Source of the DNA: Selaginella moellendorffii
Lineage: Eukaryota > Plantae > Lycopodiophyta
Direction of reading: 5' to 3'
DNA: 64,000 nt
NCBI RefSeq assembly: GCF_000143415.4
Contig: NW_003314313.1
Span: forward strand, 142,418-206,417
The translations under genes were made by a program, and so were the position numbers. How positions within the stretch are numbered: the stretch's first letter is position 1; each line of letters starts with the position of its first letter. Of this stretch, positions 10,021-60,713 are shown piece by piece. Under the pieces are notes generated by a model. The model was not told the DNA's origin and ran no database searches. It saw only the letters and a program-made list of their open reading frames with translations.

Positions 10021-12543
10021 TTAGCAACTTGTTCTTTTTCCATTTAGCTAATTGGCGTTTTTTATTTCATCTAACCTTGAAGTTCTCTATCAGATGATAA
10101 GTCTTTTTCACATAGGCTCTCGTAGTCTTTTTACATAGGCTCTCGCATACAAGGAGATTGATCTTCAGCATCCTCTTTCTTCAGCTTGTATTTGCAGCCA
10201 CCTAGTCAAAATTCACAGAGAATTTGAGCTCTGGTGCATCAATTCCTACAAACTCTTGCTCAGCGCCTCGTCGAGCTCCATTCCTCAAGAACCATAAGAA
10301 AGCCCTAATAATATCCGTCCACGTAGAATTCTACTCTTGGTTTCCCAACCAAGGGTTGTCCATTTCAAGTTCGGGCCAGCCTCGGTAGACATGGTTATGT
10401 GAAGACTTTGATGGATGCTTTGATAGGGTATGTGAAATTTGTAGAGAAGACTTGCATGCAATTCGTGTAAGCGCTGCCGGTGTTGCATGTTATTCGCAGC
10501 ACATTGACAAGATATCTAAGCTTCCCCAACATGATAGCCATACTTGTTAAGGCATTCTCTTCTAAGAGATTGAGAACAAACTTTGGACCACATTTTTTGG
10601 TGTTGGTTATACCTCCTCTCCACTTATAGAAGCATTAGGTATGCCTAACATCCAGCTCACAGCTCTCACTGAGATTGTGTTTTTAAATGTAGGAGACTTG
10701 TCTTTTACATGTTTTACCATGTTGTGTGCTGGGTGTGTCCTTTTGTATTCTGTCCTCTTCAATCTTCTGCCACACTTTATGCCTCATCATCTCCTTTTTT
10801 TATGTTGTACTTCATTCTCTCCATTGTCTTCTCCTTTCATATTGTTACACCTTAATACTTGCTGATTCTATGTTGCTGTCTTTGTCCTCTTTGCACAGCT
10901 TGCACCAGGCTTTCTCCCTTTTGAACCTTTAAAATACGAAAACATTATTGATTGGAATCAGAGACAAAGAAACATGCATGTTTATCTTGGCCATGAGTTC
11001 TGCTCTTGTGGACATTGGCACGTAGTCCACCCAATTTGGCCAGTCTAATTTGTTATAGAACACTTTGTAGAGCTGACTCTTAAGCTCATCAAACACGTTT
11101 GCTTCAAGGTTGAGATTTTCTTGCCATATTTCCTATTTTAACACACTGTTAACAAGCTACCAAAATCTTTTTACTAACTGGAAAACTCTCCTTCTCACAG
11201 AGATTCTTGCAATAGCAGCACGAATGATTTTATGCTTCTTGAGGACCAAGTGCAATAGACATTGATCCTTGCCTTTGTGGAATAGTTTATCAAAACTAAT
11301 AGAATCTAAGCACAACTTATGGAAAGATGGATCAGCCAATGCAAGCTTATAAAAGAAAATGAGCATTCCAAGTGCTAGTTCAATATGTTGAATAAGTTTA
11401 TCAACCCCCCTAAAAACATTAATTTTTTTTCATATACTAGATATTCAATTGAATATGGTCATGTTTGAGTACCATATTGGTTCGTTTATATTTTGGGTGG
11501 GCTATAACTAAATGCTTTGAATTACTCATTTTTCTTTTCTCTGTTTTAAATTTCTAATAGAGAGAAATGGGTATGAGCTCAACAATAATTACTTCTATGG
11601 GGTCATGGATTGTGTAAGAGAACTAGCCTAAAAGAGGTATAGTATTTGTAAAGTGTCTTTCATTTTAACATATTTTTCTTCAAATGTGGACTTTGAGAGT
11701 ATTCTTAACCAGAAGGAATGGGAACAGTCTCTGTATTTTAAAAAGCTACCTCAAGGTGGATTGGAGTCATGATGTTACAATAGCATGGTGCAAGGAAAAT
11801 TGAGAGGTGGGACGTTGAAAGAAAACGAGATTGACCTAAAAGAGAGGTAATGGTAAACAGCTGGGTAATTTTAATGTAATAATGATTGTCCTCAGTACAC
11901 AGATTCCAATACATCAAATTTATTATGCCAATATATATTTGCCAAATGAGCGTATAGCTGTGGTTTCACCACAACAAAGGAGGTTGTAAAATATTCATTA
12001 ATAAAATAATAAAATCATTAATTCAATAAGATTAAGAAAATCAAGTTGGAGGAACCACTTTTCAGGGGGAACTGAGAAACATGTATTGTCTTTGAACTTT
12101 ATTATCACCATGCATCACACTCTATAACAAGATAATGCCTCTTTTAAGAATTACAACTTGAATTTGACGTGAAAAATAAATCAATTATTTACTTTAGCAA
12201 ATATAGAAATATTCTTACCACTTTTTAATATACTAATTTTATTTTTATCACATATGGCTTCGATATTTACTCATGGGATTCGAAACTAAATAATTCTCAT
12301 ACAAATGCATGGCTCATTATTAATATCTAAACTAAGTTCCTCTATTAATTAGAGGTTTGACCAGATTAGTTTTCAGAGCTATAAAAGTAGGGCTTTTAAG
12401 ACTTTGTATTATACAATTTCATCTTACTTGTTTTTCTTGTCTTTGTTTTCATCTTTGTTTTTACTTTTTCATTGTCTTTTTCTTCTTCTGGACACAAGCT
12501 CTTGATAATATTTATATTTGACAAATTTCTCAATGTTATTAAA

Positions 12544-13422
12544 ATGGATAAAATTAGATTAATAAACACTATACTTATTATAGTTATATTGGTTTTACAA
12601 TTCAATAAAATTATTGCTCCAAAGAAACCTATAATTGGAAGAACAAACTATTTAAGTCCACATGATATTGGTAAAGTTATTACAGCGTTTTATGAATTAT
12701 TAAAAAAAATTAATAGAGATGAAAGTTATTCTACAACTTATGGAGATGAAGTTGAAGTTAGTACTTCAAAAGGAATTGTTTCAGTACTTATTCAATGTAA
12801 AGATAAATGTTCTGTAGAAAATACAGGTGCAACTATTATAGGTGATAAAATAGTAAGAGGTTTAACAAATTTATTAGCATTCACAATAGACACTATAAAC
12901 TTATATTCTTCAGATTCTTTTCTAAAAGATGGTACTAAATATATATTAAAATATAATCTAAAAACAGATGATTCTAATTCTTTATCAACATTTTTAAGTA
13001 TGAAGAGTCTTGATGATAAATCAGTATTTTGTGATATAAGATCTAGTATTTTATATTATGATTCATTTATTTATAGTGATAGTTTTCTAGTTTCACCTAA
13101 TGGTAGGAATATATTATTTTTAAAAATGAACTGTATTCTTATACTTTATTCAAACGGTAGGATAATTTGGGATAAATCATATTCCTTTATGAATTTGTTT
13201 AACTGTATTTTAAAATTGCAAAATAATGGGAATTTAGTTTTAAAATATAATGAGAAGGTATTATGGTCTTCAAATAAGTATTGCAATAATAAATTTGAAT
13301 GTTTTTTACCAACATATTTTACAGTTCAAAATGATTGTAATTTAGTAATTTATGAAGCAAAATTTCCAAACAAAGTTTTATGGGCATCTAATACAAATGA
13401 TCATATATTATGTAATGTATAA
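12544..13422 (+). CDS. Intronless, very AT-rich secreted protein with a C-terminal bulb-type (GNA/B-) lectin domain
   Basis: Signal-like MDKIRLINTILIIVILVLQFNKIIA. The C-terminus has LVSPNG, LKLQNNGNLVLK..VLWSSN and FTVQNDCNLVIY..VLWASNT (QxDxNxVxY motif). The N-terminal ~150 aa were not recognised. Confidence 0.75.
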   Translation: MDKIRLINTILIIVILVLQFNKIIAPKKPIIGRTNYLSPHDIGKVITAFYELLKKINRDESYSTTYGDEVEVSTSKGIVSVLIQCKDKCSVENTGATIIGDKIVRGLTNLLAFTIDTINLYSSDSFLKDGTKYILKYNLKTDDSNSLSTFLSMKSLDDKSVFCDIRSSILYYDSFIYSDSFLVSPNGRNILFLKMNCILILYSNGRIIWDKSYSFMNLFNCILKLQNNGNLVLKYNEKVLWSSNKYCNNKFECFLPTYFTVQNDCNLVIYEAKFPNKVLWASNTNDHILCNV

Positions 13423-14043
13423 ATTCATCTTGCAGCCTTGTCATTTATTAATATCTCAATCATATCAATAATTTATTTGAGCTCCAAAATGCTAAACCTT
13501 TTGTATTTTCACTCTTTCTTCTTCTTTATTCATTCTTTGAATACATGGCCTAAACACTAGACATATGATATTTTCTGCAAGTCCTTCTTCAATGAAATAA
13601 TCAACTTTTTATGGAGTTATTCTTCTCTGTAGAACACCTTTATGAAATTTGACACATATTTTGTTTTACATATAAATATTAAATCAAACTACAATAAAAA
13701 AAATAAAATTTAATGAATATTGCTTGTAATGGGATTGCTGCATCCAATTGGGCGTTGCAGGACCCTGTTATTAGGGTACTCATAGCCATGGTATTTAAAA
13801 CCGTTTGATACTCCGAGGATTCAGTATTAGTAGAGTATCTGTATGTGCTCCTGCCCATTTAGAGTCTAGCTCGGAACCATAATTAGAATCCATTGTGAGA
13901 AGTAACTGGAATCGCGGAATTGAGCAGCGCCAGAGATGTGCACGCCGATCGAACGTATCCCAGATAATCCCGCACGGAATCTTCTTAAGCTTAAGTTCCA
14001 TCTTCCTCATTCTCTTCGATTCTTCACTCTTATGAAAGGAGGG

Positions 14044-27736: not shown

Positions 27737-30252
27737 ATGCTAGAGAGGCGAGGCTTGATCGCGCTCCGAGGTAGTGGCAGTAGGATTCTCACGGGCATTG
27801 GCGTGCGGAGATTGGGATCGCGAGCGTCGGACAGCGAGCGCGAGAATCCGGTGCTGGAGGAGCGGCGGCGGCGGGTCAGGGAGCTCGCGAGGGCCAGGTT
27901 TGCTGAGCAGCAGCTGAAGAAGAGAGGGGAAGTAGAGAAGAAGTATAAGAGGGGAGAGATCGATGGGAGGAAGTTCGTGGATTGGGGAAAGGATAAGTTT
28001 AGACTTCCTCTCAGAGATGGATCGGGTCTTTTGCTGGGCAAGGCAGAACGAGAGAAGATCGAAAATGCAAAGATCGTGAGGAAGAAAGCGGAGGATTTGG
28101 AGAAAGAAAGGGAGAATTTGAAGAAGAAGACGAAGAAGACGTCTCAGGAGGTCACCAAGAGCAAAGATTCCAGAAGTTCAAACGTAAAGGCCAAAGAAAA
28201 ATCGTCCAGCATTGACACAGAGGAGGAAGAAGAAGAAGAAGACGACGAAGAGTTTGAGCCGGGGAAAAAGCTCAAGAAGAAAAAGAAGAAAAGTAGTGTT
28301 CCTGTGGCAAAGCCCAAGAGCCAAGGCACAGAATTGATCGAAGCTGCGATAAAATCCTTGAAGTCTCTCCAGAGGGAAGTTGACGGAGTAGTGGAGCCTC
28401 TTGATCTTCCTCCTGCGAAGGTGGAAGGATGGAAGACTTCTTACCGGGAGAGAGTTGAGAGAGCTTTGGTTGACAAAGGCCTCGTCCCACAAGAAGAAAG
28501 TGGGACTGTCGCTACAGGAGAAGAAGAGATTCCGGAGAGCACTGCTATACTAAACAGCTTCATGGAGAGCAACGAATTCGAAAGCTCGGAAGAAGACGAT
28601 GAAGACTTCAAATCATTTGAGGAAATCGTGATCAAGGGAGGTGATGATCAGACAGCTAGCTGGGAAAGTGAAAAGATGATTGAGGAGTTTAACACAGCCA
28701 CAACGTCTTCGTCCGCTCAAGGTGATGAGAAAGTCTCGGACGAAGATGACCAGCCGGCTAGCTTGGAACGTGAGAAGATGATTGAGGATTTGAACACGGC
28801 CACAACGTCTTCGTCCGCTCAAGGTGATGAGAAAGTCTCTGGAGCGACTCAAGTCAAGGCACTACTGGCAGCCATCGACGATCGCTCGGCTGATATCGGA
28901 TCTGTGTCACTGGACGAGCAAATGTCCGTGAGAGTCGGGATAATTGGAGCTCCCAACGCCGGGAAGTCTTCACTCTTAAACTTCCTGGTAAGCGATTCTA
29001 TCTTTCTTCTTCGTATGTTTTCTTTACTTCCCATCCAAATGCAGGTTGGAACCAAGGTGTCGGCAGTCTCTCGAAAGACAAACACAACACGAAACGAGAT
29101 CCTCGGAGTTTTAACAGAGAATGATACGCAAGTTGTAAGCTTTTGATGCTTTTTCTTGAGGAATATGGAGCTTATCTTCGGCCTTCGCAGCTGTTTTACG
29201 ACACTCCTGGTTTGATGATGCGCTGGAAGGGTCAGGCCGTAAGACGAGACGTCAAAAGCCGAGTCCAAAGCGCCTGGATGGTCACTGGCCACTGCGAAGT
29301 TCTCATCGTGCTGGTGGACGCTCATCGCCAGATAGAACGGTAAGGACGTATACATTTCCTCGATGAAGCAACTCAGACGTGGTTCTTCGCTTGACAGTCC
29401 CGACCAGAGAGTGAGAAAACTGATCGAAAAGCTGGGCGAGAAGAAGGATCCAAAGCAAAAGAGGATCTTGTGCTTGAACAAAGTCGACTTGATTCGTCAA
29501 AAGCGGGAGTTAGTGCCGCTGGCGCAGGAGTTTGGCTCGCTCCCTGGATACGACAGGTATCAAAAAAATTCGTCACTTCCCATCTCTTCAACGTTTCACG
29601 TCACAGGGTCTTCATGATCTCCGGCTTGAGAGGAAGCGGCGTGAGACACTTAAAAGAGTACCTTTTAGAGAAAGTGAGCTTCTTTTCTTTTCTCTCTTTT
29701 CGGCTTTTGGTTTTGCTCACACGATTTGTTTCTTCGTTCTAGGCAGTACCCAGGCCTTGGGAAGAAGAAAAGGGTGTCGTGACGGACATGAGTCCTATCG
29801 CAGTGGCGAAAGAAGTTGTGTGGGAGCACGTCCTTGACAATGTACACCAGGTAATACTTGCAAACTCTTGCAAATTCTCGAGAAGAATTTATTTGATCGC
29901 TTTATTTGTTTCCAGGAAATACCGTATCATCTTCACCACAAGCACGTCTCGTGGAAAATCTTAAAAGACCGCTCCATCCGCATCGAGCAGCAGATAATCG
30001 TGCCTACAGACTCTCAAAAGAAGATTCTCGTTGGCAAGAATGGAGGTCTCATCAGGTAACTCGGACGATGCTAATTTCCACAGGCTAAAGAGCTCGCGAG
30101 CGTGTTCTTCCAGGAAAATCGGAATGGCTGCAAACGAGGAACTGTCAGCGCGGTTTGGAGCTAAAGTCCACCTGATCCTGGACGTGAAAATCGCTGGCTC
30201 CGACAACATGTACGCTGCCTCTGAGAACGCGGCCGACGAGATGTGGCTGTAG
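27737..30252 (+). CDS. Era-family GTPase (ERG-like) with a long charged N-terminal extension
   Basis: G1 GAPNAGKS, TTR, DTPG, NKVD, MISGLRGSG; KH-type region EIPY...ILVGKNGGLIRKIG. Confidence 0.9.
28643..28840 (+). repeat. In-frame 102-bp tandem duplication inside the Era N-terminal extension
   Basis: DDQTASWESEKMIEEFNTATTSSSAQGDEKVS and DDQPASLEREKMIEDLNTATTSSSAQGDEKVS start at 28643 and 28745. Confidence 0.9.
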
Positions 30253-34159: not shown

Positions 34160-36208
34160 ATGGATTGCTTGAGCTTGGATCTTCCAGACGCTCCCGTGAA
34201 GTTCTCCTCCTATGCCTCACTCTTACGGCAAACAAAGAATTTAGAGCAAGGCAAACTTCTTCACGCTCATATTGAAAAATTTGGCCACAGCTGCGATACG
34301 TTCCTGGGAAATCTCCTCGTCCAAATGTACGGCAGGTGCCAGGACGTGGACTCGGCCAGGGCCGCCTTCGACTCCATCGTACGGAAGAACGTCTTCTCGT
34401 GGTCTTTGATGCTCGCGGCATATGCCCAGAACGGGCATCTTGATGATGCCCGGAAAGTGTTCGACCACATTCCGGAACGGAATGTCGTTTGCTGGAATTC
34501 CATAATGGCGTTCTACGCGGAGAATGGCCGGCAGATGGACGCTCTACATCTGCTGGCGGTTATGGATCTGGAGGGCGTCCCGCCGTCGGATGTGACGGTC
34601 CTTGTCGCGCTGGAGTCGTGCGGCGCCGTTGGATGGCTCGGCTTGGGGCAGTGCCTTCATGCGTCTCGAGCTTGCGAGCTAGGGCTTGTCAAGAACGCGG
34701 CAGTAGGCGCTGCGCTAGTGACGATGTATGGCAAGTGTGGATCGATCGAGCGAGCTAGATCGGCGTTTGTTGCTCTTCCCAAGAGGAATGTGGTGTGCTG
34801 GACATCGATGATCGCAGCGCTTGCCGAGAACGCGGAATTTTCAGATGCGGTGGGGGTGTTTCGATCGATGATCCAGGAAGGATTGAAGCCGGACGCCGTG
34901 GCTTTGATCACTATTCTCGACGCTTGCGCGAGTCTTGGATCCCTGGCAATGGCCGAATCGGTGTATTCTTCTGGTTCTTGGCAGTGGAATCCCTCGCAGG
35001 ATGTTAGAATCGGCAATGCGGCAGTGAATATGTTTGGCAAATGCGGCAGCGTGGAGAGATCGATGGAAATTTTCGACGCGATGGAACAAAGAAATATCGT
35101 CTCTTGGACAGGCATGGTTGCGGCATTCGCACAGAACGGGTGCTTTGAGCAGGCATTGGGGTTATTCAGGACGATGGATCTCCACGGAGTCTTCCCGGAC
35201 GAGATCACGTTTGTGAGCGCAATCGTTGCCTGCGGCAGCCTGGGAGATCTCGCAACTGGGAGATTACTCCACCAGGAGTGCTGCGCAGCCTCGTCCTCCA
35301 ATTTCGCCGTCGCCAGCGCTCTGATCGATATGTACGCTCGATGCGACCACATCGAGCTTGCCAGGGCGGCCTTTGACGCGATCCTGCCGTGCTGCTGCAA
35401 GGTCGGCGCCTGGAATTCGATGATCTCGGCTTACGCTCGCAATCGCCAGGGAAGAGAGGCGATGCAGATCTTCCGTGCCATGGATCTCGACGGCGTCGCG
35501 CCAAACGCGATCACCTTGATCACTCTCCTAGACGCTTGCGCCAACACCCCATCCCTCGCGCACGATCGATTCATCCATTCCAGCATAGCCGATCTGCAAA
35601 CCCTAGAGCACGATCGCCGCGTCAAGAACGCGCTCATCAACATGTATGGAAAGGGCGGAAATTTCAGCAAAGCAAGAAGCATCTTTAAGAATATCCGCCA
35701 CGCTGGCGACATCGTGACGTGGACTGCCATGGTGGAGGCATATGCCCAAAACGGCTATGGTGACATGGCAGTGGCGACCTTCATGGAGATGGAGCTCGAG
35801 GGGATTATCCCTAACGAGATCACATTCACGAGCATCGTCTCGGCGTGTACGCACTCCGGCCTCGTCAATCAGGGCTTGTTCTTCTTCGCGTCACAGATGG
35901 AAGATTACGGCATCGCGGCGCGCAGCGATCAGCCACTGGTCGGGATCGTGGATCTCCTCTCGAGATCGGGGCATATTTCGGAGGCGGCGGGAGTGATCGA
36001 TTCGATGCCATTCCGGCCACATTCCGCGACGCTGACGACGATCCTCAGCGCTTGCCGGATCCACGGCGATCGCCAGACGGGATCGGCGATCGCTCGCAAG
36101 ATCGCGGCGGAGGAGCCGGAGAGCCGCGCGACGTATCAGCTGCTGTCCAACATCTATGCCGAGGGCGCGTCAGGTGAGTCGCTCGTTCTTTCTTTCGCGA
36201 GATTTTAG
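34160..36208 (+). CDS. PLS-class PPR protein with E domain, no DYW
   Basis: Repeated LVxMYGKCG/VSWTxMIxAYAQNG motifs; ACTHSGLV...MPFRP...YQLLSNIYA. Confidence 0.93.
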   Translation: MDCLSLDLPDAPVKFSSYASLLRQTKNLEQGKLLHAHIEKFGHSCDTFLGNLLVQMYGRCQDVDSARAAFDSIVRKNVFSWSLMLAAYAQNGHLDDARKVFDHIPERNVVCWNSIMAFYAENGRQMDALHLLAVMDLEGVPPSDVTVLVALESCGAVGWLGLGQCLHASRACELGLVKNAAVGAALVTMYGKCGSIERARSAFVALPKRNVVCWTSMIAALAENAEFSDAVGVFRSMIQEGLKPDAVALITILDACASLGSLAMAESVYSSGSWQWNPSQDVRIGNAAVNMFGKCGSVERSMEIFDAMEQRNIVSWTGMVAAFAQNGCFEQALGLFRTMDLHGVFPDEITFVSAIVACGSLGDLATGRLLHQECCAASSSNFAVASALIDMYARCDHIELARAAFDAILPCCCKVGAWNSMISAYARNRQGREAMQIFRAMDLDGVAPNAITLITLLDACANTPSLAHDRFIHSSIADLQTLEHDRRVKNALINMYGKGGNFSKARSIFKNIRHAGDIVTWTAMVEAYAQNGYGDMAVATFMEMELEGIIPNEITFTSIVSACTHSGLVNQGLFFFASQMEDYGIAARSDQPLVGIVDLLSRSGHISEAAGVIDSMPFRPHSATLTTILSACRIHGDRQTGSAIARKIAAEEPESRATYQLLSNIYAEGASGESLVLSFARF

Positions 36209-41924: not shown

Positions 41925-43895
41925 ATGGTGGCACTCTTGAGCGAGCTCCGAGCGTGTCTAAAACGGTGTTGCGATTTGAGAGACTTATCGACCGGCAAAA
42001 GTATTCACGAGTGGATCTCGCAAAGCGAGTACAGAGACCACAAGGGCCTGGCGAGCCAGCTCGTTCTTCTGTACGGGAGGTGCGGCCGCGTCGACGAGGC
42101 ACGTACGGTGTTTGATTCCATCCATGATCCGAATCTACAAGCGTGGAACACTATGACGAATGCGTATGCCCAGAACGGGTATATTGCAACGGCAGAGGAG
42201 ATGTTTCACTTGACGAAGAACAAAGATGTTATCTCCTGGAACTCAATGATTTCTGCTTACAATATCAACTCGCAATTGCCAAATGCTAGCAAGTTTTTCG
42301 CGAAAATGCCTGCTTCTAATGTTACGACTTGGAACACTATGATCACAGCCTTTGCCGAAGATGGGTATTTGTTCCAAGCGAAAGAACTTTTTCTATCTAT
42401 GAAAGAGAGAGATGTAATATCATGGAACGCCTTGTTGAAAGGATTTGCGTTAGAAGGATCCGTCATGTCAGTGAGGTTCCTATTTTTCTTGATGCCTCAG
42501 AGGACACTCCTTTCATGGAGTGTGATGTTTCATGCGTGTGCCCAGGGAAGGTTCCATGACGAGACTTTAGAAATCTTTCAGGCTATGCCCGAGCACAACT
42601 CGATCCTCTGGAATACTTTGATATCCTCATATGCCCAGAAATCTTCTCATATCGACACAGTCAAACTACTTTTTGATGACATGCCTGAGCGAGATGCCAT
42701 CTCCTGGAACACGCTTTTCGAAGCATATGCCCGTGGGGGATACCATGAAAAAAGCAAGCTTATCTTTGCAAAGATGCCGGAAAGGAGCAGTGTAGCTTGG
42801 ACCATTATGCTGCAGGTATATGCCGACAACAATGAGCTAGAAGAAGTGAAGAAGACTTTTGAAACAATGCAGGGCCATCAGGACAATGTGTGCAAGACAA
42901 CTACGATCTTGGCGTATGCCCAAAACGGGCATCTCAGGGATTCCAAGGAAATCTTTGATCATATGACCCAACGCGACGTGATATCCTGGACTGCAATGTG
43001 CAATTCATATGTCCTGAACTACATTGTTTGCGATGCAAAGGTGACGTTCGATCGGATGCCTGCATGGAGCCTTGTGACACTAAACGCAATTTTAACTGCG
43101 TATTTCCAAAACCATCTCCTAGAATCGGCAGCGCAGCTGTTTGGTACAATGCCCGAAAGAGATGTTGTGTCTTGGAATGCGATTCTCTCCGGCTATGGAC
43201 AGAACCAAAGCTTCAAAGAAGGGATCAAAGCGTACACTTTGATGCCTGGACACAATGCCGTGTCGTGGACAAGCATGATCGCAATGTTTGGGTGCAATGG
43301 AAAAGTAGTAGAAGCGAAGGAAATCTTCGATCTGATGCGTGAGAGGGCATCACTGGCGTGGAACTGCATGCTTGGCACGTATGCCCAGTCTGGGCATCTG
43401 GAGAAAGCAAAGTTCTCTTTCATAGTTATGCCGTTTCATAGCCCAACTACGGTGGACATTATGATTTCCATGCATGCTCACTCGGGGAACTTTGGTGATG
43501 CGATACGAATTCTCTGCCACCTTTGTTTGCAAGGCCTAATGCCCACCGACATGACCTTTCTGGGCATCTTGAGCGGATGCAACCACGTTGGGCTTCTTGG
43601 TCTTGGGCGCGAGTGTTTTGTAGAAATGCAGGGTGATTACAGCATTGCTCCCAGCAAGCAGCACTTTAGCTGCATGGTGGACGTGTTGGGTCGAGCGGGA
43701 CAAATGGAACTTTGCGAGGATTTGATCAAGCATATGCCCTTTTTGCCGGACTCGATTGCATGGATCTCACTCCTGGCATCAAGTAAGATCAACAAGGATC
43801 AAGATTTTGCTAGGCTTGCATCTCGAGAGCTCCAGAACTTGATACCCAACCAAAGTGCACCATATCTGTTGCTCTCCAGTACTATAGTTGTGTAA
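41925..43895 (+). CDS. PLS-class PPR protein with many short 31-aa motifs, E domain, no DYW
   Basis: Tandem F..MPERDVVSWN motifs; CNHVGL...HFSCMVDVLGRAG...MPFLPD...PYLLLSS. Confidence 0.92.
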   Translation: MVALLSELRACLKRCCDLRDLSTGKSIHEWISQSEYRDHKGLASQLVLLYGRCGRVDEARTVFDSIHDPNLQAWNTMTNAYAQNGYIATAEEMFHLTKNKDVISWNSMISAYNINSQLPNASKFFAKMPASNVTTWNTMITAFAEDGYLFQAKELFLSMKERDVISWNALLKGFALEGSVMSVRFLFFLMPQRTLLSWSVMFHACAQGRFHDETLEIFQAMPEHNSILWNTLISSYAQKSSHIDTVKLLFDDMPERDAISWNTLFEAYARGGYHEKSKLIFAKMPERSSVAWTIMLQVYADNNELEEVKKTFETMQGHQDNVCKTTTILAYAQNGHLRDSKEIFDHMTQRDVISWTAMCNSYVLNYIVCDAKVTFDRMPAWSLVTLNAILTAYFQNHLLESAAQLFGTMPERDVVSWNAILSGYGQNQSFKEGIKAYTLMPGHNAVSWTSMIAMFGCNGKVVEAKEIFDLMRERASLAWNCMLGTYAQSGHLEKAKFSFIVMPFHSPTTVDIMISMHAHSGNFGDAIRILCHLCLQGLMPTDMTFLGILSGCNHVGLLGLGRECFVEMQGDYSIAPSKQHFSCMVDVLGRAGQMELCEDLIKHMPFLPDSIAWISLLASSKINKDQDFARLASRELQNLIPNQSAPYLLLSSTIVV

Positions 43896-53189: not shown

Positions 53190-53946
53190 CCTCGCTAGAG
53201 CCCTAAGATCTGATAATTACAGGTGTTGGTACAGCCTACTTACCCGAGCTCAGAAAGCACTTGCGTCACCAACAAAGCTGGAAACCGCTTCCTTGGGATC
53301 CAGAACTTTCTCCCGGAATCCCAAGACCTCGAGATGCCAACGTTGTCAGATTCTGGTCGATCCTTCATGCCTGTCCATAAATGTATCAGCGACCATTGTG
53401 TGCAACCAGAAATAACAGGACCCATAGCTTTCCATTCGTCAGGACGATTCCAAGGTGGCATGTATATCGTCTCCCGTCAACAAAGCCGGTGCTTATATAT
53501 ATTCCTCTACGCGCGATTCCACTCCACTATAGCCTGTGTCGGAATTATTTGGCACTGGAACAACACAGCGCTGGTAAAATCGCAGACCAACTTCCAAGAT
53601 GTTACCTCAGTGCTGGGCAAGGCTTACACTTTAGCACCCATAATATCCCACTGTTGGCCTACTTGTATTCTCTTTCCTGTCAAACGAGTAATAGAGAAGT
53701 AAAAAACATATGTGGTCTACCTTTAAAGGATCCATTGGCCATTTTCCTCCCTCTTTCCTCCATTTTTTTAACCTGTCCATTTGATCCGGATCCTTGTGAA
53801 AGATCGCATTGTTCCCAGTAAAAGCTACAACCAGGTTATGTTAGTCTAAGCAGCCTTTTCAGCTGTTGAGAGGATACGCTATCGCTATATAAATCAAAAG
53901 AAAAAAACTAGCAAGCCATACCTCGAGTCACCTCGGAAAGAGATAA

Positions 53947-54396
53947 ATGGCGAGAGCTCCTGTTGCAGTAGCAGTCTTCCTGGTTCTTCTCCTCCTATCC
54001 TTGCTCCAAATCTCTCCTGCTGCAGGTTTGTTGTGCTGAAAGAAGGTTGTTCTTTCCGCTACTAACAGATTTGAACTTTCAGCATCCAATCTAGTAGCAC
54101 CGCGTAAGCTGCTTCTAGTCGTCTTGCATGATGGAGAACCCGCTCCTCCTGGAAAGGTCTGATAACTCTCTTCTTCTCAAACCGTGTTTCTTCAGTAGCA
54201 AGCTTTAGAGAAAAGAAGAAGAAAAGAGGGAAATCACCTGACAGTTAGTTTGAATTTCAACTGTTTGCAGCTATATCACTCGTCTCGCTGGATTTCCGAA
54301 GAAGGCAGCTTTGATGAGCAAGTCTTCCATACTGACTATCCCAACCCACACCGGGGACCTTCACCTGGTGGACATTCTAACAAGCCAGGAATCTAG
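53947..54396 (+). CDS. Small secreted peptide-hormone precursor (RGF/GLV-like with CEP/PIP-like tail)
   Basis: Exons 53947-54025, 54083-54156 and 54271-54396 give MARAPVAVAVFLVLLLLSLLQISPAAASNLVAPRKLLLVVLHDGEPAPPGKLYHSSRWISEEGSFDEQVFHTDYPNPHRGPSPGGHSNKPGI*, with canonical GT-AG introns. Confidence 0.72.
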
Positions 54397-54401
54397 AAAC
54401 T

Positions 54402-55033
54402 TTACTCGGAAGCCTGCGGTGCTCGAGCCGAGCGAGAGATATCCTCAGTCTCTTCGATAATTCGTCCGTCCAGGGGTATCAGATTAGGAATTCCATCGAT
54501 GATCTGCGGGAAAAGCGAGCAGTCAGAAGGAATGAACAAGAGAAACACACGCATAAAGAAGAAAAAAAGAAGAAAGAGAAAAGAATAAAAAAAGAAGAAG
54601 AAGAAGAAGAAGAAAAAAAGTAACCAATAAAGCTACGAAGTTTTGTAAGTCACAGTCGTGTAGAGAGCTCTCATCACACGCACCGGATATGCGACGCCCA
54701 GTTCGTCGCTGATGAGCTCCTGTCTCTTCTCACTATATCTGTGAATGATGGATCATCAGTGAGCATACCAGTGTTTTTCAGCATCTAGAGAAAATTTTAA
54801 CTCTATTTTCTTCCGAGGATTCGATGCCGATTTCCTGGCGGCAATGATAAACAAATGAAATAGCAGGGAATTCCAATCCAGTACAATGCCAGGCGCGACG
54901 AAAGAGAGAAGAATTTTTGCTGCCTATCGATTCCATAGGTCGATGATTGATCGTACCTGAGACCCGTCTTGCTGAGCGGGCACACCAGGAACTCGAGCAG
55001 CTTTGGATCGAACGCGCGCTTGGCCATCGCCAT
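54402..55033 (-). CDS. Trm112-like UPF0434 / PreY (PYURF) family protein
   Basis: FDPKLLEFLVCPLSKTGLR/YSEKRQELISDELGVAYP/IIDGIPNLIPLDGR; 3 exons. Confidence 0.88.
54555..54620. repeat. GAA/AAG-rich microsatellite in the PreY intron
   Basis: Visible (gaa)n run. Confidence 0.7.
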
Positions 55034-57739: not shown

Positions 57740-59062
57740 TCACAAGTAATGTAAAGCAGACTTTTCTCTTAACTTGTCCACGAAGAAATCTAAGCTCTTG
57801 GGCGCTCGATCGGCAGCGAGCTTGAGCTTCTGTGCGTTTCTCCGGATCTCCTCCGACTCCATCACCTCCTTGATCGCTTCGGCGATCTGGAAGCTCTCGA
57901 GAGTGGCCAGTTTGACCCCGGCCTTGCGAAGCTCCACTAGGAGCTTGCAGTTGATGGGCTGATCCATAAAGGCCGGGAAGCCGAGGATTGGAACGCCGAG
58001 GCTGGAGCTCTCGAGGCATGAATTCCATCCGCAGTGCGTCAGGAACGATCCGGTGGATGGGTGTGATAGGATTCGTAGCTGCGGCGCCCAGTTTCGCAGG
58101 ATCAATCCAGATTTTTCCGCTCCAGTGGGGACGTAATCGCCATCGCCACTGAATTTCCAGATGAAAGGATGGCCGGATTGCTCGAGCCCACTCAAGATCT
58201 CGCGAGCGTCCTTCTCGTTTCGCTGGATGAGCGTTCCAAACGAGACGAAGACCACCGAGGATGGAGCTTGCGCGTCGAGGAACTCCATAATCTCCGCCTC
58301 TTCTTCCTGGCGGTGGGATCCGACGGTCGAGGATGGCTCGGGGATCAGCGGCCCAACCGCAAAGACGGGCGCACGGTGAGGATTGAGGCACGTGTCACGC
58401 ACCATGCCGGATAAGATTGACGGCTCCAGCTCGCGGTACGTGTTGACGAGGATGCCGTCCGATGCCTGTGCCTCAATGGCGCCTTCGAGAAAGTAATCCG
58501 CACGCCACGGGAAGGTATCTAGGTACGGGCTAAGATATTCCCTCGCAACGACCGTCATCCCGATAAACGGAATATCCACCGTCTCGTTCCTCGCGACCTG
58601 GAGCGGGAGCTTGGAATCCCTGGCGAGCGATGGCGCGAGTAGCGTAGCGGCAAATGCCGACGCGGATTCTGGGACGAGGATATAGCGCGGGATGCCCAGC
58701 AATCGTGCGGATTTGGCGAGTGTTCCACACACCTCGTCGCTAATCAGGCACGATGGTGGTGGCTGGAGCGATGAGACGAGCTGCTCGAATTCCTGGGCGA
58801 GCGAGGGCATGAGGAAGAAATCCCGGCTGAAATCGTTGGGCGCCGAGTCGAAATCGCGGGCGTGGAGCGCGACGAAGCGGATTTCTGGAGAATGTGGCCG
58901 GGACCTTGCGTCGCAGAGGCGCGATTCGTGGTGGGCGGGGTAGAGGAAGCTTACCCTAGCGCCGGAATCGACGAGGCGCGAGGCGAGAACCATGGCGGGG
59001 ATGATGCGGCCATGGACGGGATAGACGAAGACGAGGACGTGAAGAGCACCATCTCCTCCCAT
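57740..59062 (-). CDS. Family 1 UDP-glycosyltransferase, intronless
   Basis: PSPG box WAPQLRILSHPSTGSFLTHCGWNSCLESSSLGVPILGFPAFMDQ; SVVFVSFGT; likely start MGGDGALHVLVF. Confidence 0.92.
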   Translation of the reverse strand: MGGDGALHVLVFVYPVHGRIIPAMVLASRLVDSGARVSFLYPAHHESRLCDARSRPHSPEIRFVALHARDFDSAPNDFSRDFFLMPSLAQEFEQLVSSLQPPPSCLISDEVCGTLAKSARLLGIPRYILVPESASAFAATLLAPSLARDSKLPLQVARNETVDIPFIGMTVVAREYLSPYLDTFPWRADYFLEGAIEAQASDGILVNTYRELEPSILSGMVRDTCLNPHRAPVFAVGPLIPEPSSTVGSHRQEEEAEIMEFLDAQAPSSVVFVSFGTLIQRNEKDAREILSGLEQSGHPFIWKFSGDGDYVPTGAEKSGLILRNWAPQLRILSHPSTGSFLTHCGWNSCLESSSLGVPILGFPAFMDQPINCKLLVELRKAGVKLATLESFQIAEAIKEVMESEEIRRNAQKLKLAADRAPKSLDFFVDKLREKSALHYL

Positions 59063-60713
59063 TTTTGTTTCTTCGTTCTCTCTGTCCTCCTTTTGAAGAC
59101 AACCGGCAAGCTTGACTTTGTCGTGTGCTTGTTTGTTTTTTCCATTTTCGCACGAAAGTTGACAGAAAGTTGACGGATGCTGTCTTTTACATGAAAGTTC
59201 AATTGTCGAGTAGAATATTGCGGTGTTTCGTAGCAGACGCGTAGAATACTTCGCGGAAATAACTGCCCCACGGCGCACACAGTGAAAGCCAGTCAAAACC
59301 CTTCTAGTAGCCGTTGACTGGCTCACTCAATGCTGGTCAACTCCATCAACTATAACACGCCCAACTTTCTCCGCGCTTGTCTTTTAGACTGGGCCTCCTC
59401 TGCCAGAATTGTCTTTGCACAGACCTTTCAAACCTCGAGAAGATTCCTTTGCAATCCAGGCCGTCGGATCCTGCGACGTGGAATATTCCTCGCTTTGGCT
59501 ATTTGCCACCCGAGGCTGAGGCTCGGTGTGCGTGTGCAGGCAAAGGGCCACCGAAAACGCCCCGCCATCCGCCTTATCCGCGCGCACGACAGAATTTTGG
59601 AGGCACAACATTTGATACATGTCACCGATCTTTGGCCAGCCAAGCATTTCAATCTATACAATATACATTTATTTGCCTTGTCACAAAAATCAAAGAACTA
59701 CCCTAGGAAGAACATTGTAAACAATCTATCTCTGTTTCACTGGCCGCTACTACCGAAAGAATTATTAGTTTCCTTTCCCCCCACCTACAAAATTTAGTAT
59801 AAAAGAGTTTGTATGGCTTTGAATCTGAATCCAAATGGATGGATCGATCCCCACACTTCCACTGGCGATTTAGCTTAGAAAACAAGGGATCTCACATCAC
59901 ACACTGTGATTCATATCGTTACAAAGCCCTCAAGGATTTGCAACAGGGCAACACAAGAGATTTGCTTTGGTTTCTATGATGAAACTTTTGACCTTCCGAT
60001 AAGATGTCTGTTTCTAGTGCTTGCGAGGCCCCCTCACACAGTAGATACATACGTGTTTCTACGGCGTATATTATCACGTCCCTATTGTAGAGGTGTCCAG
60101 TAACGCTGATCGGTAATAATTTTACATCGTCGAGGATTTGTCCAATGGCCCGCTGGCCACTTGGCTGGTCCAAAAGTCAGTGTGGCGCCACGCCCCGTCC
60201 GTGCGAATAATGTCCATGAACGTGCACACAATGAATGATATGAGCCGTACAACTGGCGCTGTTTCTTACGTACGCATTGGCCACTCCGACCCGGCCTGGC
60301 AGCTCAGGCTCGGTGCCGAGCCTAGTCTCCGGACGCCAAGCTGGAATTCAAACATGGTTAAAATATGGACACACAAAGCAGCAAAGAGGAAGAAGCAAGG
60401 GCGATGGCGATGGCGAGGGCGATCGGCGAGGGAGAGTGCCGTAGATTTTTCTAGGGATTCACTCGGTTGATCGATCGAGCGTGTTGGCGCGGCGTGCCCT
60501 GCGATTGCTTCTCCGGCGGCAATCTTGTGTTTTGGGGGATTCGGCGAGGCATCCTGGGATTTCTACGGCACTCTAGCCGACCCTAGGGAGCAAGAAAGCG
60601 CGTCAGCGCCAGGAATGCGAGCTCTTCTTCTAGGTCTGTGTGACGATCTGTGCTGAGCGCCGGGGTATCGGACGGGAGAACACGAAATATTTCGGGAAGA
60701 GATTGGGGAAAGA

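Follow-up and report, generated by a model that had tools for sequence, protein, structure and literature searches.

The window analyzed here, a 64-kb stretch of the Selaginella moellendorffii genome, carries on its + strand a predicted three-exon gene (53947-54025, 54083-54156, and 54271-54396) with two GT-AG introns, as read from the sequence. Joined, the exons form an in-frame coding sequence of 279 nt (93 codons) specifying a protein of 92 residues that contains no cysteine. The features of the locus, numbered from the first nucleotide of the window, are:

53886..53894, + strand: TATA-like box, TATATAAAT, 53 nt 5' of the ATG (read from the sequence)
53910..54500, strand not given: approximate transcribed unit (rough bounds, from word shares only)
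53947..54025, + strand: exon 1, 79 nt, with the start codon and signal peptide (residues 1-27)
54026..54082, + strand: intron 1, 57 nt, GT..AG (predicted from the sequence)
54083..54156, + strand: exon 2, 74 nt, pro-region with RKLL (54103-54114) within APRKLLLVVLHDGEP
54157..54270, + strand: intron 2, 114 nt, GT..AG (predicted from the sequence)
54271..54396, + strand: exon 3, with the acidic stretch, peptide domain, short tail, and TAG stop (from translation)
54322..54339, + strand: pre-motif VFHTDY, a flank conserved among lycophyte RGF precursors of Group H
54334..54375, + strand: predicted mature 14-mer, DYPNPHRGPSPGGH (from translation)
to 54381, + strand: alternative 16-mer, ending ..HSN (from translation)
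54382-54393, + strand: tail KPGI (from translation)

The first-pass annotation had described three short exons, missed by the listing of open reading frames, that join through GT-AG introns to encode about 92 residues. This predicted model was reproduced exactly, and none of the three exons holds a meaningful stand-alone ORF. An in-frame TAA (53944-53946) lies directly 5' of the ATG at 53947, and intron 1 includes a branch-point-like TACTAAC at 54060-54066. The exons are richer in GC (0.50-0.53; 0.53 for the two that flank intron 1) than are the introns (0.39 for intron 1, 0.38 for intron 2). GC3 of the predicted coding sequence is 0.42, versus 0.56-0.71 in three neighboring genes; this counts against the gene model, but with only 93 codons the point is weak. 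No paralogue of the peptide gene was found anywhere in the 64-kb window.

The surroundings are varied. Two intronless pentatricopeptide-repeat genes lie on the + strand, at 34160-36208 (682 aa) and 41925-43895 (656 aa). The first is present exactly in NCBI, and its 90% cluster representative is XP_024527226.1 (Selaginella), from a different, longer contig. A UDP-glycosyltransferase ORF occupies 57740-59326 on the - strand (Pfam UDPGT, E 1.4e-31); no recorded protein corresponds to its product when translated from the first plausible Met (59065), and the annotated model probably differs. The beginning of the MMR_HSR1 GTPase domain is matched at the C-terminal end of a 469-aa ORF (27737-29146, + strand), which probably represents a single exon of a larger gene. 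Farther upstream, an AT-rich stretch (12001-14000; GC 0.27) adjoins an ORF (12472-13422, + strand) with a weak B_lectin match below the Pfam cut-off. Just 3' of the peptide gene lies a purine-rich (AAG/AAA)n tract (54540-54620).

Transcription was evaluated through word-share searches of sequencing runs, using the spans 53947-54396 and 53700-54700; the RNA nature of the runs was guessed. Within 53947-54396, the share of sampled words is 0.67-1.00 in fifteen RNA-like runs drawn from nine studies. The same runs hold 0.43-0.70 of the words in 53700-54700, which corresponds to about 0.20-0.54 in the flanks. The resulting ratio of words inside to words outside is 1.6-4.6 in the RNA-like runs, versus a flat 0.9-1.5 in three DNA runs. 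Such a contrast is characteristic of a discrete transcribed unit enclosing the ORF, at roughly 53.9-54.5 kb. The position of the TATA-like box at 53886-53894 fits the left edge of this unit, and a promoter role for it may be proposed.

These RNAs are at least partly unspliced. For an RNA spliced at both introns, the share of words in the coding span could not exceed 0.45, whereas every RNA-like run holds at least 0.67; each of these runs therefore includes RNA that retains intron sequence. Splicing at 54025^54083 and 54156^54271 is predicted from the splice signals. In a separate observation, the 2024 DNA runs (X1, X3, and X6) hold 0.65-0.72 of the words in 53947-54396, and the RNA-like runs X11, X8, and X9 hold 0.96-1.00. 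The DNA sample of the 2024 runs may represent an accession or haplotype different from the assembled one.

The translated exons display, in order, the parts of a secreted peptide precursor. Exon 1 encodes what reads by eye as a signal peptide: a basic n-region with R3; a hydrophobic core spanning V6-I22; and Ala-Ala-Ala before S28. The mean Kyte-Doolittle value is 2.94 for this 17-residue core (residues 6-22), versus -0.75 for the remainder. Exon 2 encodes ..APRKLLLVVLHDGEPAPPGK, and exon 3 encodes the acidic stretch EEGSFDEQ, followed by VFHT-DYPNPHRGPSPGGH-SNKPGI and then TAG. The strong signal peptide, RKLL motif, and acidic stretch reported in the first-pass annotation were all recovered on the translated exons, as was the near-terminal peptide motif at 54334-54375.

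Precursors of the RGF/GLV/CLEL family are recognized by several shared properties, of which the following have a counterpart here. A secretion signal heads a small precursor, as judged by reading the sequence. The pro-region contains a predicted S1P/SBT6.1 site (RxLx or RxxL), namely RKLL at 54103-54114. The domain near the carboxyl terminus opens with Asp-Tyr (D73-Y74), 20 residues before the stop. Finally, VFHTDY corresponds to the [VL]FH.DY flank that precedes the peptide in lycophyte Group H RGF precursors generally (PMC8329595). The exact string VFHTDY is present in an RGF from Pseudolycopodiella caroliniana, and SRK[ILM]L occurs in the pro-region of many lycophyte RGF precursors (PMC8329595 supplement). 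One Selaginella apoda Group H precursor carries SSRKLLLVHDRPP (PMC8329595 supplement), which is echoed by the RKLLLV..HD block here (APRKLLLVVLHDGEP). The three RGF-precursor features (signal peptide; RKLLLV..HD; and VFHTDY with DY..P) each occupy an exon of their own and follow one another in the expected order and in a common frame.

A profile HMM was built from eight published Group H ends (supplementary sequences, Furumizu & Sawa 2021, PMC8329595). Exon 3 receives 15.3-16.0 bits (E about 1e-3) from this profile and is the single match among 1978 pieces of the six-frame translated window (97,647 residues); the runner-up has 4.7 bits. In 5000 shuffles of the tail, the exon 3 score was never attained. 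The match is restricted to positions 1-11 (EQVFHTDYPNP), leaving the HPPHSH half of the profile unaligned. By eye, no canonical HPPHSH is encoded in the other reading frames of exon 3. Within the six-frame translation of the window, the pattern [VLIF]FH.DY occurs only once. A similar AH[TL]DY is found in PSK precursors, and the flank may be shared more broadly among precursors of sulfopeptides. Kinship to RGF/GLV peptides, suggested in the first-pass annotation from the peptide itself, is thus backed at the level of the precursor, by the profile match in the flank and by the likeness of the RKLL block to lycophyte RGFs. Assignment to the RGF family is made because the precursor features match; the mature peptide by itself does not decide.

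Neither exon 3 nor the full 92-aa protein has a word-search match in a protein collection that includes the proteome of this genome; therefore the gene is unannotated. Comparison of exon 3 with 1.84 billion representatives (phmmer) returned nothing at E 1e-3 or better, a search with little power for a 41-residue query, and neither Pfam nor the ESM Atlas yielded a match for the peptide precursor. No orthologue or paralogue emerged from these searches. A search for an allelic or orthologous copy proceeded through neighboring genes (the UDP-glycosyltransferase and two ORFs), whose products are not on record. The peptide motif strings are absent from searchable papers and from the supplements of two RGF catalogues.

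The locus might instead produce a non-coding, unspliced transcript, with the 92-aa reading a chance assembly of short ORFs. Such a transcript would account for the intron words in every RNA-like run; for the lack of a recorded protein, homologue, or Pfam match in the collections searched; and for the low GC3. Chance would then have to place a signal peptide, RKLLLV..HD, and VFHTDY..P in a single frame, joined through GT-AG introns and accompanied by TACTAAC. It would also have to supply a profile match that is unique among 97,647 six-frame residues and equaled by no shuffle. We therefore regard a non-coding origin as distinctly unlikely.

The mature peptide domain is less orthodox than its precursor. 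The defining marks of Group H are His8, which is highly conserved, and Pro9-Pro10; those of Group R are a central R/K (positions 7-8) and an end that is invariantly Asn12-Asn13 in lycophytes and His12-Asn13 in seed plants (PMC8329595). The central residues here are His6-Arg7-Gly8-Pro9-Ser10. The Group H hallmark is absent, with Gly8, Pro9, and Ser10 in its place. Of the Group R hallmark only Arg7 is present: Gly occupies position 8, the end is out of register, and there is no Asn-Asn or His-Asn.

The length of the peptide can be read in two ways. RGF peptides normally comprise 13, rarely 14, residues and end in His or Asn. The candidate 14-mer (ending ..GGH) fits catalogued 14-residue variants; the 16-mer, with the end ..HSN, is just as possible. 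Peptides of 14 residues would result from several Group H sequences that contain a third proline (PMC8329595). Against one such catalogued lycophyte 14-mer, DYSGPSTHPPPEGH, the predicted DYPNPHRGPSPGGH aligns gap-free with 7 of 14 residues identical (D1, Y2, P5, P9, P11, G13, and H14). Two substitutions in DYSGPSTHPPPEGH, P10 to S and E12 to G, suffice to generate the "SPGGH" appearance.

To gauge the affinities of the mature domain, the 14-mer and 16-mer were aligned with 19 reference peptides, the null being shuffles that keep both composition and the DY start. The near-match of the peptide start to Arabidopsis GLV1, pointed out in the first-pass annotation, holds: residues 1-9 are identical at seven positions. 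AtGLV1 (p about 0.02) and AtCEP1 (p 0.04-0.05) give the sole scores nominally better than chance, and neither survives 19 comparisons; these are the two peptides that had been picked beforehand. PIPL3, IDA, CLE, CIF1, and PSY1 score at or below the shuffle mean. By these alignments, the mature peptide shows no significant affinity to any family beyond what its composition would give.

The first-pass annotation had proposed a chimeric RGF plus CEP/PIP motif that bridges these families. In its strongest form, the peptide would be a true hybrid ligand or represent an ancestral family: its G.SPG.GH end would be homologous to that of CEP/PIP peptides, an RGF-type sulfotyrosine head would precede it, and an HSL/CEPR-type receptor would perceive it. 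A GxGH end is indeed common to CEP and PIP (PMC8462819), the peptide could end ..GGH, and the AtCEP1 alignment contains 10 identities. That alignment requires four gaps, and its nominal p value, for a peptide chosen in advance, fails over 19 comparisons. The 15-residue CEP pattern, (D/A)F.PT.PG.SPG.GH, is broken by Tyr2, by the lack of Pro-Thr, and by the absence of one residue before GH. The cores expected of PIP/PIPL and IDA peptides (SGPS with GxGH; PS.PS..HN) likewise are lacking, and the scores are those of chance (AtPIPL3, p 0.42-0.50; AtIDA, p 0.80-0.89; MpIDA1, p 0.23), as they are for CLE.

Phylogenetic distribution also speaks against a hybrid. CEP genes, reported only from seed plants, are said to be absent from S. 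moellendorffii and to have originated after lycophytes diverged but before seed plants (PMC4197245; PMC8462819), and PIPs are reported to have arisen in angiosperms (PMC8462819). (The scan that found no CEPs required signal peptide and domain in one ORF and would miss a three-exon gene.) Moreover, the precursor features are those of RGFs, and the same end is explained by a catalogued RGF 14-mer carrying two substitutions. The chimera is not supported, its CEP/PIP likeness being no better than composition provides, and a hybrid ligand of this kind is very unlikely. The suggestion of a new or ancestral peptide family fares no better: no relative bearing the motif was found in the searches, and "ancestral" is without basis. 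On its sequence, the predicted peptide is a mosaic within the RGF family, its flank and frame being those of Group H and its His-Arg center resembling Group R, and is no fusion of RGF with CEP or PIP.

Other sulfotyrosine families come to mind, notably CIF (about 21 residues) and PSY (about 18), for which the whole 20-residue carboxyl terminus, DY..KPGI, would serve as the peptide. The opening DY, a PSP core like that of CIF1, and the 20 residues to the stop are all compatible with this, and CIF and RGF peptides are said to be hard to separate except by length (PMC8462819). However, alignment scores lie at or below the shuffle mean (AtCIF1, p 0.83-0.97; AtPSY1, p 0.68-0.77), the end, ..KPGI, offers neither Asn nor His, and flank and pro-region match RGF precursors. 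Membership in either family is extremely improbable.

Our preferred reading, held with moderate confidence, is an unannotated Selaginella gene for a 92-aa RGF/GLV/CLEL prepropeptide of lycophyte Group H descent with a divergent mature domain. Its closest counterparts are the lycophyte Group H RGF-like precursors (PMC8329595), notably the 14-residue variants DYSGPSTHPPPEGH and DYSGVSTHPPPRPH of Lycopodium deuterodensum and the Group H sequences of S. apoda and S. moellendorffii. Shared with these are the signal peptide; the RK[ILM]L site (RKLLLV..HD here, RKLLLVHD in S. apoda); the [VL]FH.DY flank; and the DY start. In the 14-residue frame, P5, P9, P11, G13, and H14 agree with the Group H 14-mers. 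The differences are Gly for His8, Ser for Pro10, the His6-Arg7 center, and a precursor of 92 aa versus about 130-190 aa. The carboxyl-terminal tail is short or absent in Group H precursors as it is here, the six residues SNKPGI being counted as a difference.

Comparison with other peptides yields partial likenesses. With Arabidopsis GLV1/RGF6/CLEL6 (DYPQPHRKPPIHN, Group R), the product shares DYP.PHR.P, an S1P-type site in the pro-region, and the Asp-Tyr amino terminus, which in GLV1 serves both TPST and aspartate-dependent cleavage (PMC7162652). Unlike GLV1, it lacks Lys8, Pro10, and the I-H-N end. The Group R genes of Selaginella differ from this locus in their flanks (..MRTDY or ..MSMDY), their invariant Asn-Asn end, and their tails of 9-18 residues (PMC8329595). 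CEP1 (DFRPTNPGNSPGVGH) and PIP/PIPL peptides (..SGPS..G.GH) resemble it in a Gly/Ser/Pro-rich second half able to end in G-H. Unlike them, it has Tyr where CEP has Phe at position 2, lacks P-T, and has one residue fewer before GH; CEP peptides are not characterized by sulfation.

The catalogues place the gene in context. Two from 2021 list for S. moellendorffii only the RGF gene models 404292/438132, 407655, and 412527/441866. In a pan-species RGF study of 2026 (PMC13503966), six RGFs and five DY motifs are counted in this species, and the locus may be among them. One outcome named in advance as fatal to the first-pass proposal was assignment to an RGF or PSY gene already catalogued. The locus is absent from the two RGF catalogues, and its precursor features are those of RGFs. 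A divergent member of the known RGF family is most likely, rather than a new hormone family.

A divergent member need not be a functional one. The gene could be a decaying or neutral RGF paralogue, transcribed and perhaps spliced, that has lost the RGI-binding residues (His8, Pro10, and a His/Asn end in register) and with them hormone action. The altered hallmark positions, the lack of a motif-bearing relative in the searches, the low GC3, and the intron-containing RNA in all RNA-like runs are in keeping with decay. Decay would nonetheless have spared an ORF intact over three exons with canonical splice sites, along with DY, the acidic stretch, the pre-motif, and RKLL, and the unit is present in RNA-like runs from many studies. 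Accepted lycophyte RGFs, moreover, vary in length at the same site (PMC8329595). Decay is unlikely on this balance.

If the gene instead encodes an active RGF, as we favor, its maturation would resemble that of Arabidopsis CLEL6/GLV1, whose route is documented and in which TPST needs Asp before Tyr (PMC7162652). By this analogy, the signal peptide would be removed upon entry into the ER, and a Golgi subtilase of the S1P/SBT6.1 type would cut at RKLL. Tyr74, preceded by Asp73 and the acidic stretch, would be sulfated by TPST, and one or more prolines may be hydroxylated. An aspartate-dependent subtilase would free the amino terminus before Asp73, and trimming of the carboxyl-terminal tail would leave the 14-mer (..GGH) or the 16-mer (..HSN). 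Splicing, the identity of the receptor, and each of these processing steps, including sulfation and hydroxylation, are predictions.

RGF peptides are perceived by RGI/RGFR receptors, in which an RxGG motif reads the sulfotyrosine. S. moellendorffii is reported to possess TPST as well as three RGI orthologues (PMC8462819). The receptor presumably would be a subfamily XI LRR-RK, most likely one of the three Selaginella RGI-clade receptors.

A more adventurous version of the RGF reading treats the product as a functional intermediate: a Group H-type precursor that acquired the GLV1-like His-Arg core of Group R and a CEP/PIP-like, Gly-rich ..SPGGH end. We consider this quite improbable. Were such a form conserved in Selaginellaceae and active, it would illustrate how a single sulfopeptide scaffold can drift between the ligand classes of LRR-RK subfamily XI, and it would bear on how Group R RGFs originated.

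Short motifs rich in Pro, Gly, Ser, and His readily mimic several ligand families, which urges caution toward claims of chimeric hormones based on motifs. Small peptide-hormone genes also routinely escape annotation. In this long-standing lycophyte model, the RGF repertoire has been taken as three loci, and the locus adds an atypical member that is listed in neither of the two catalogues. Its Group H precursor features, together with the GLV1-like His-Arg center, are relevant to the question of where the RGFs of Group R came from (PMC8329595).
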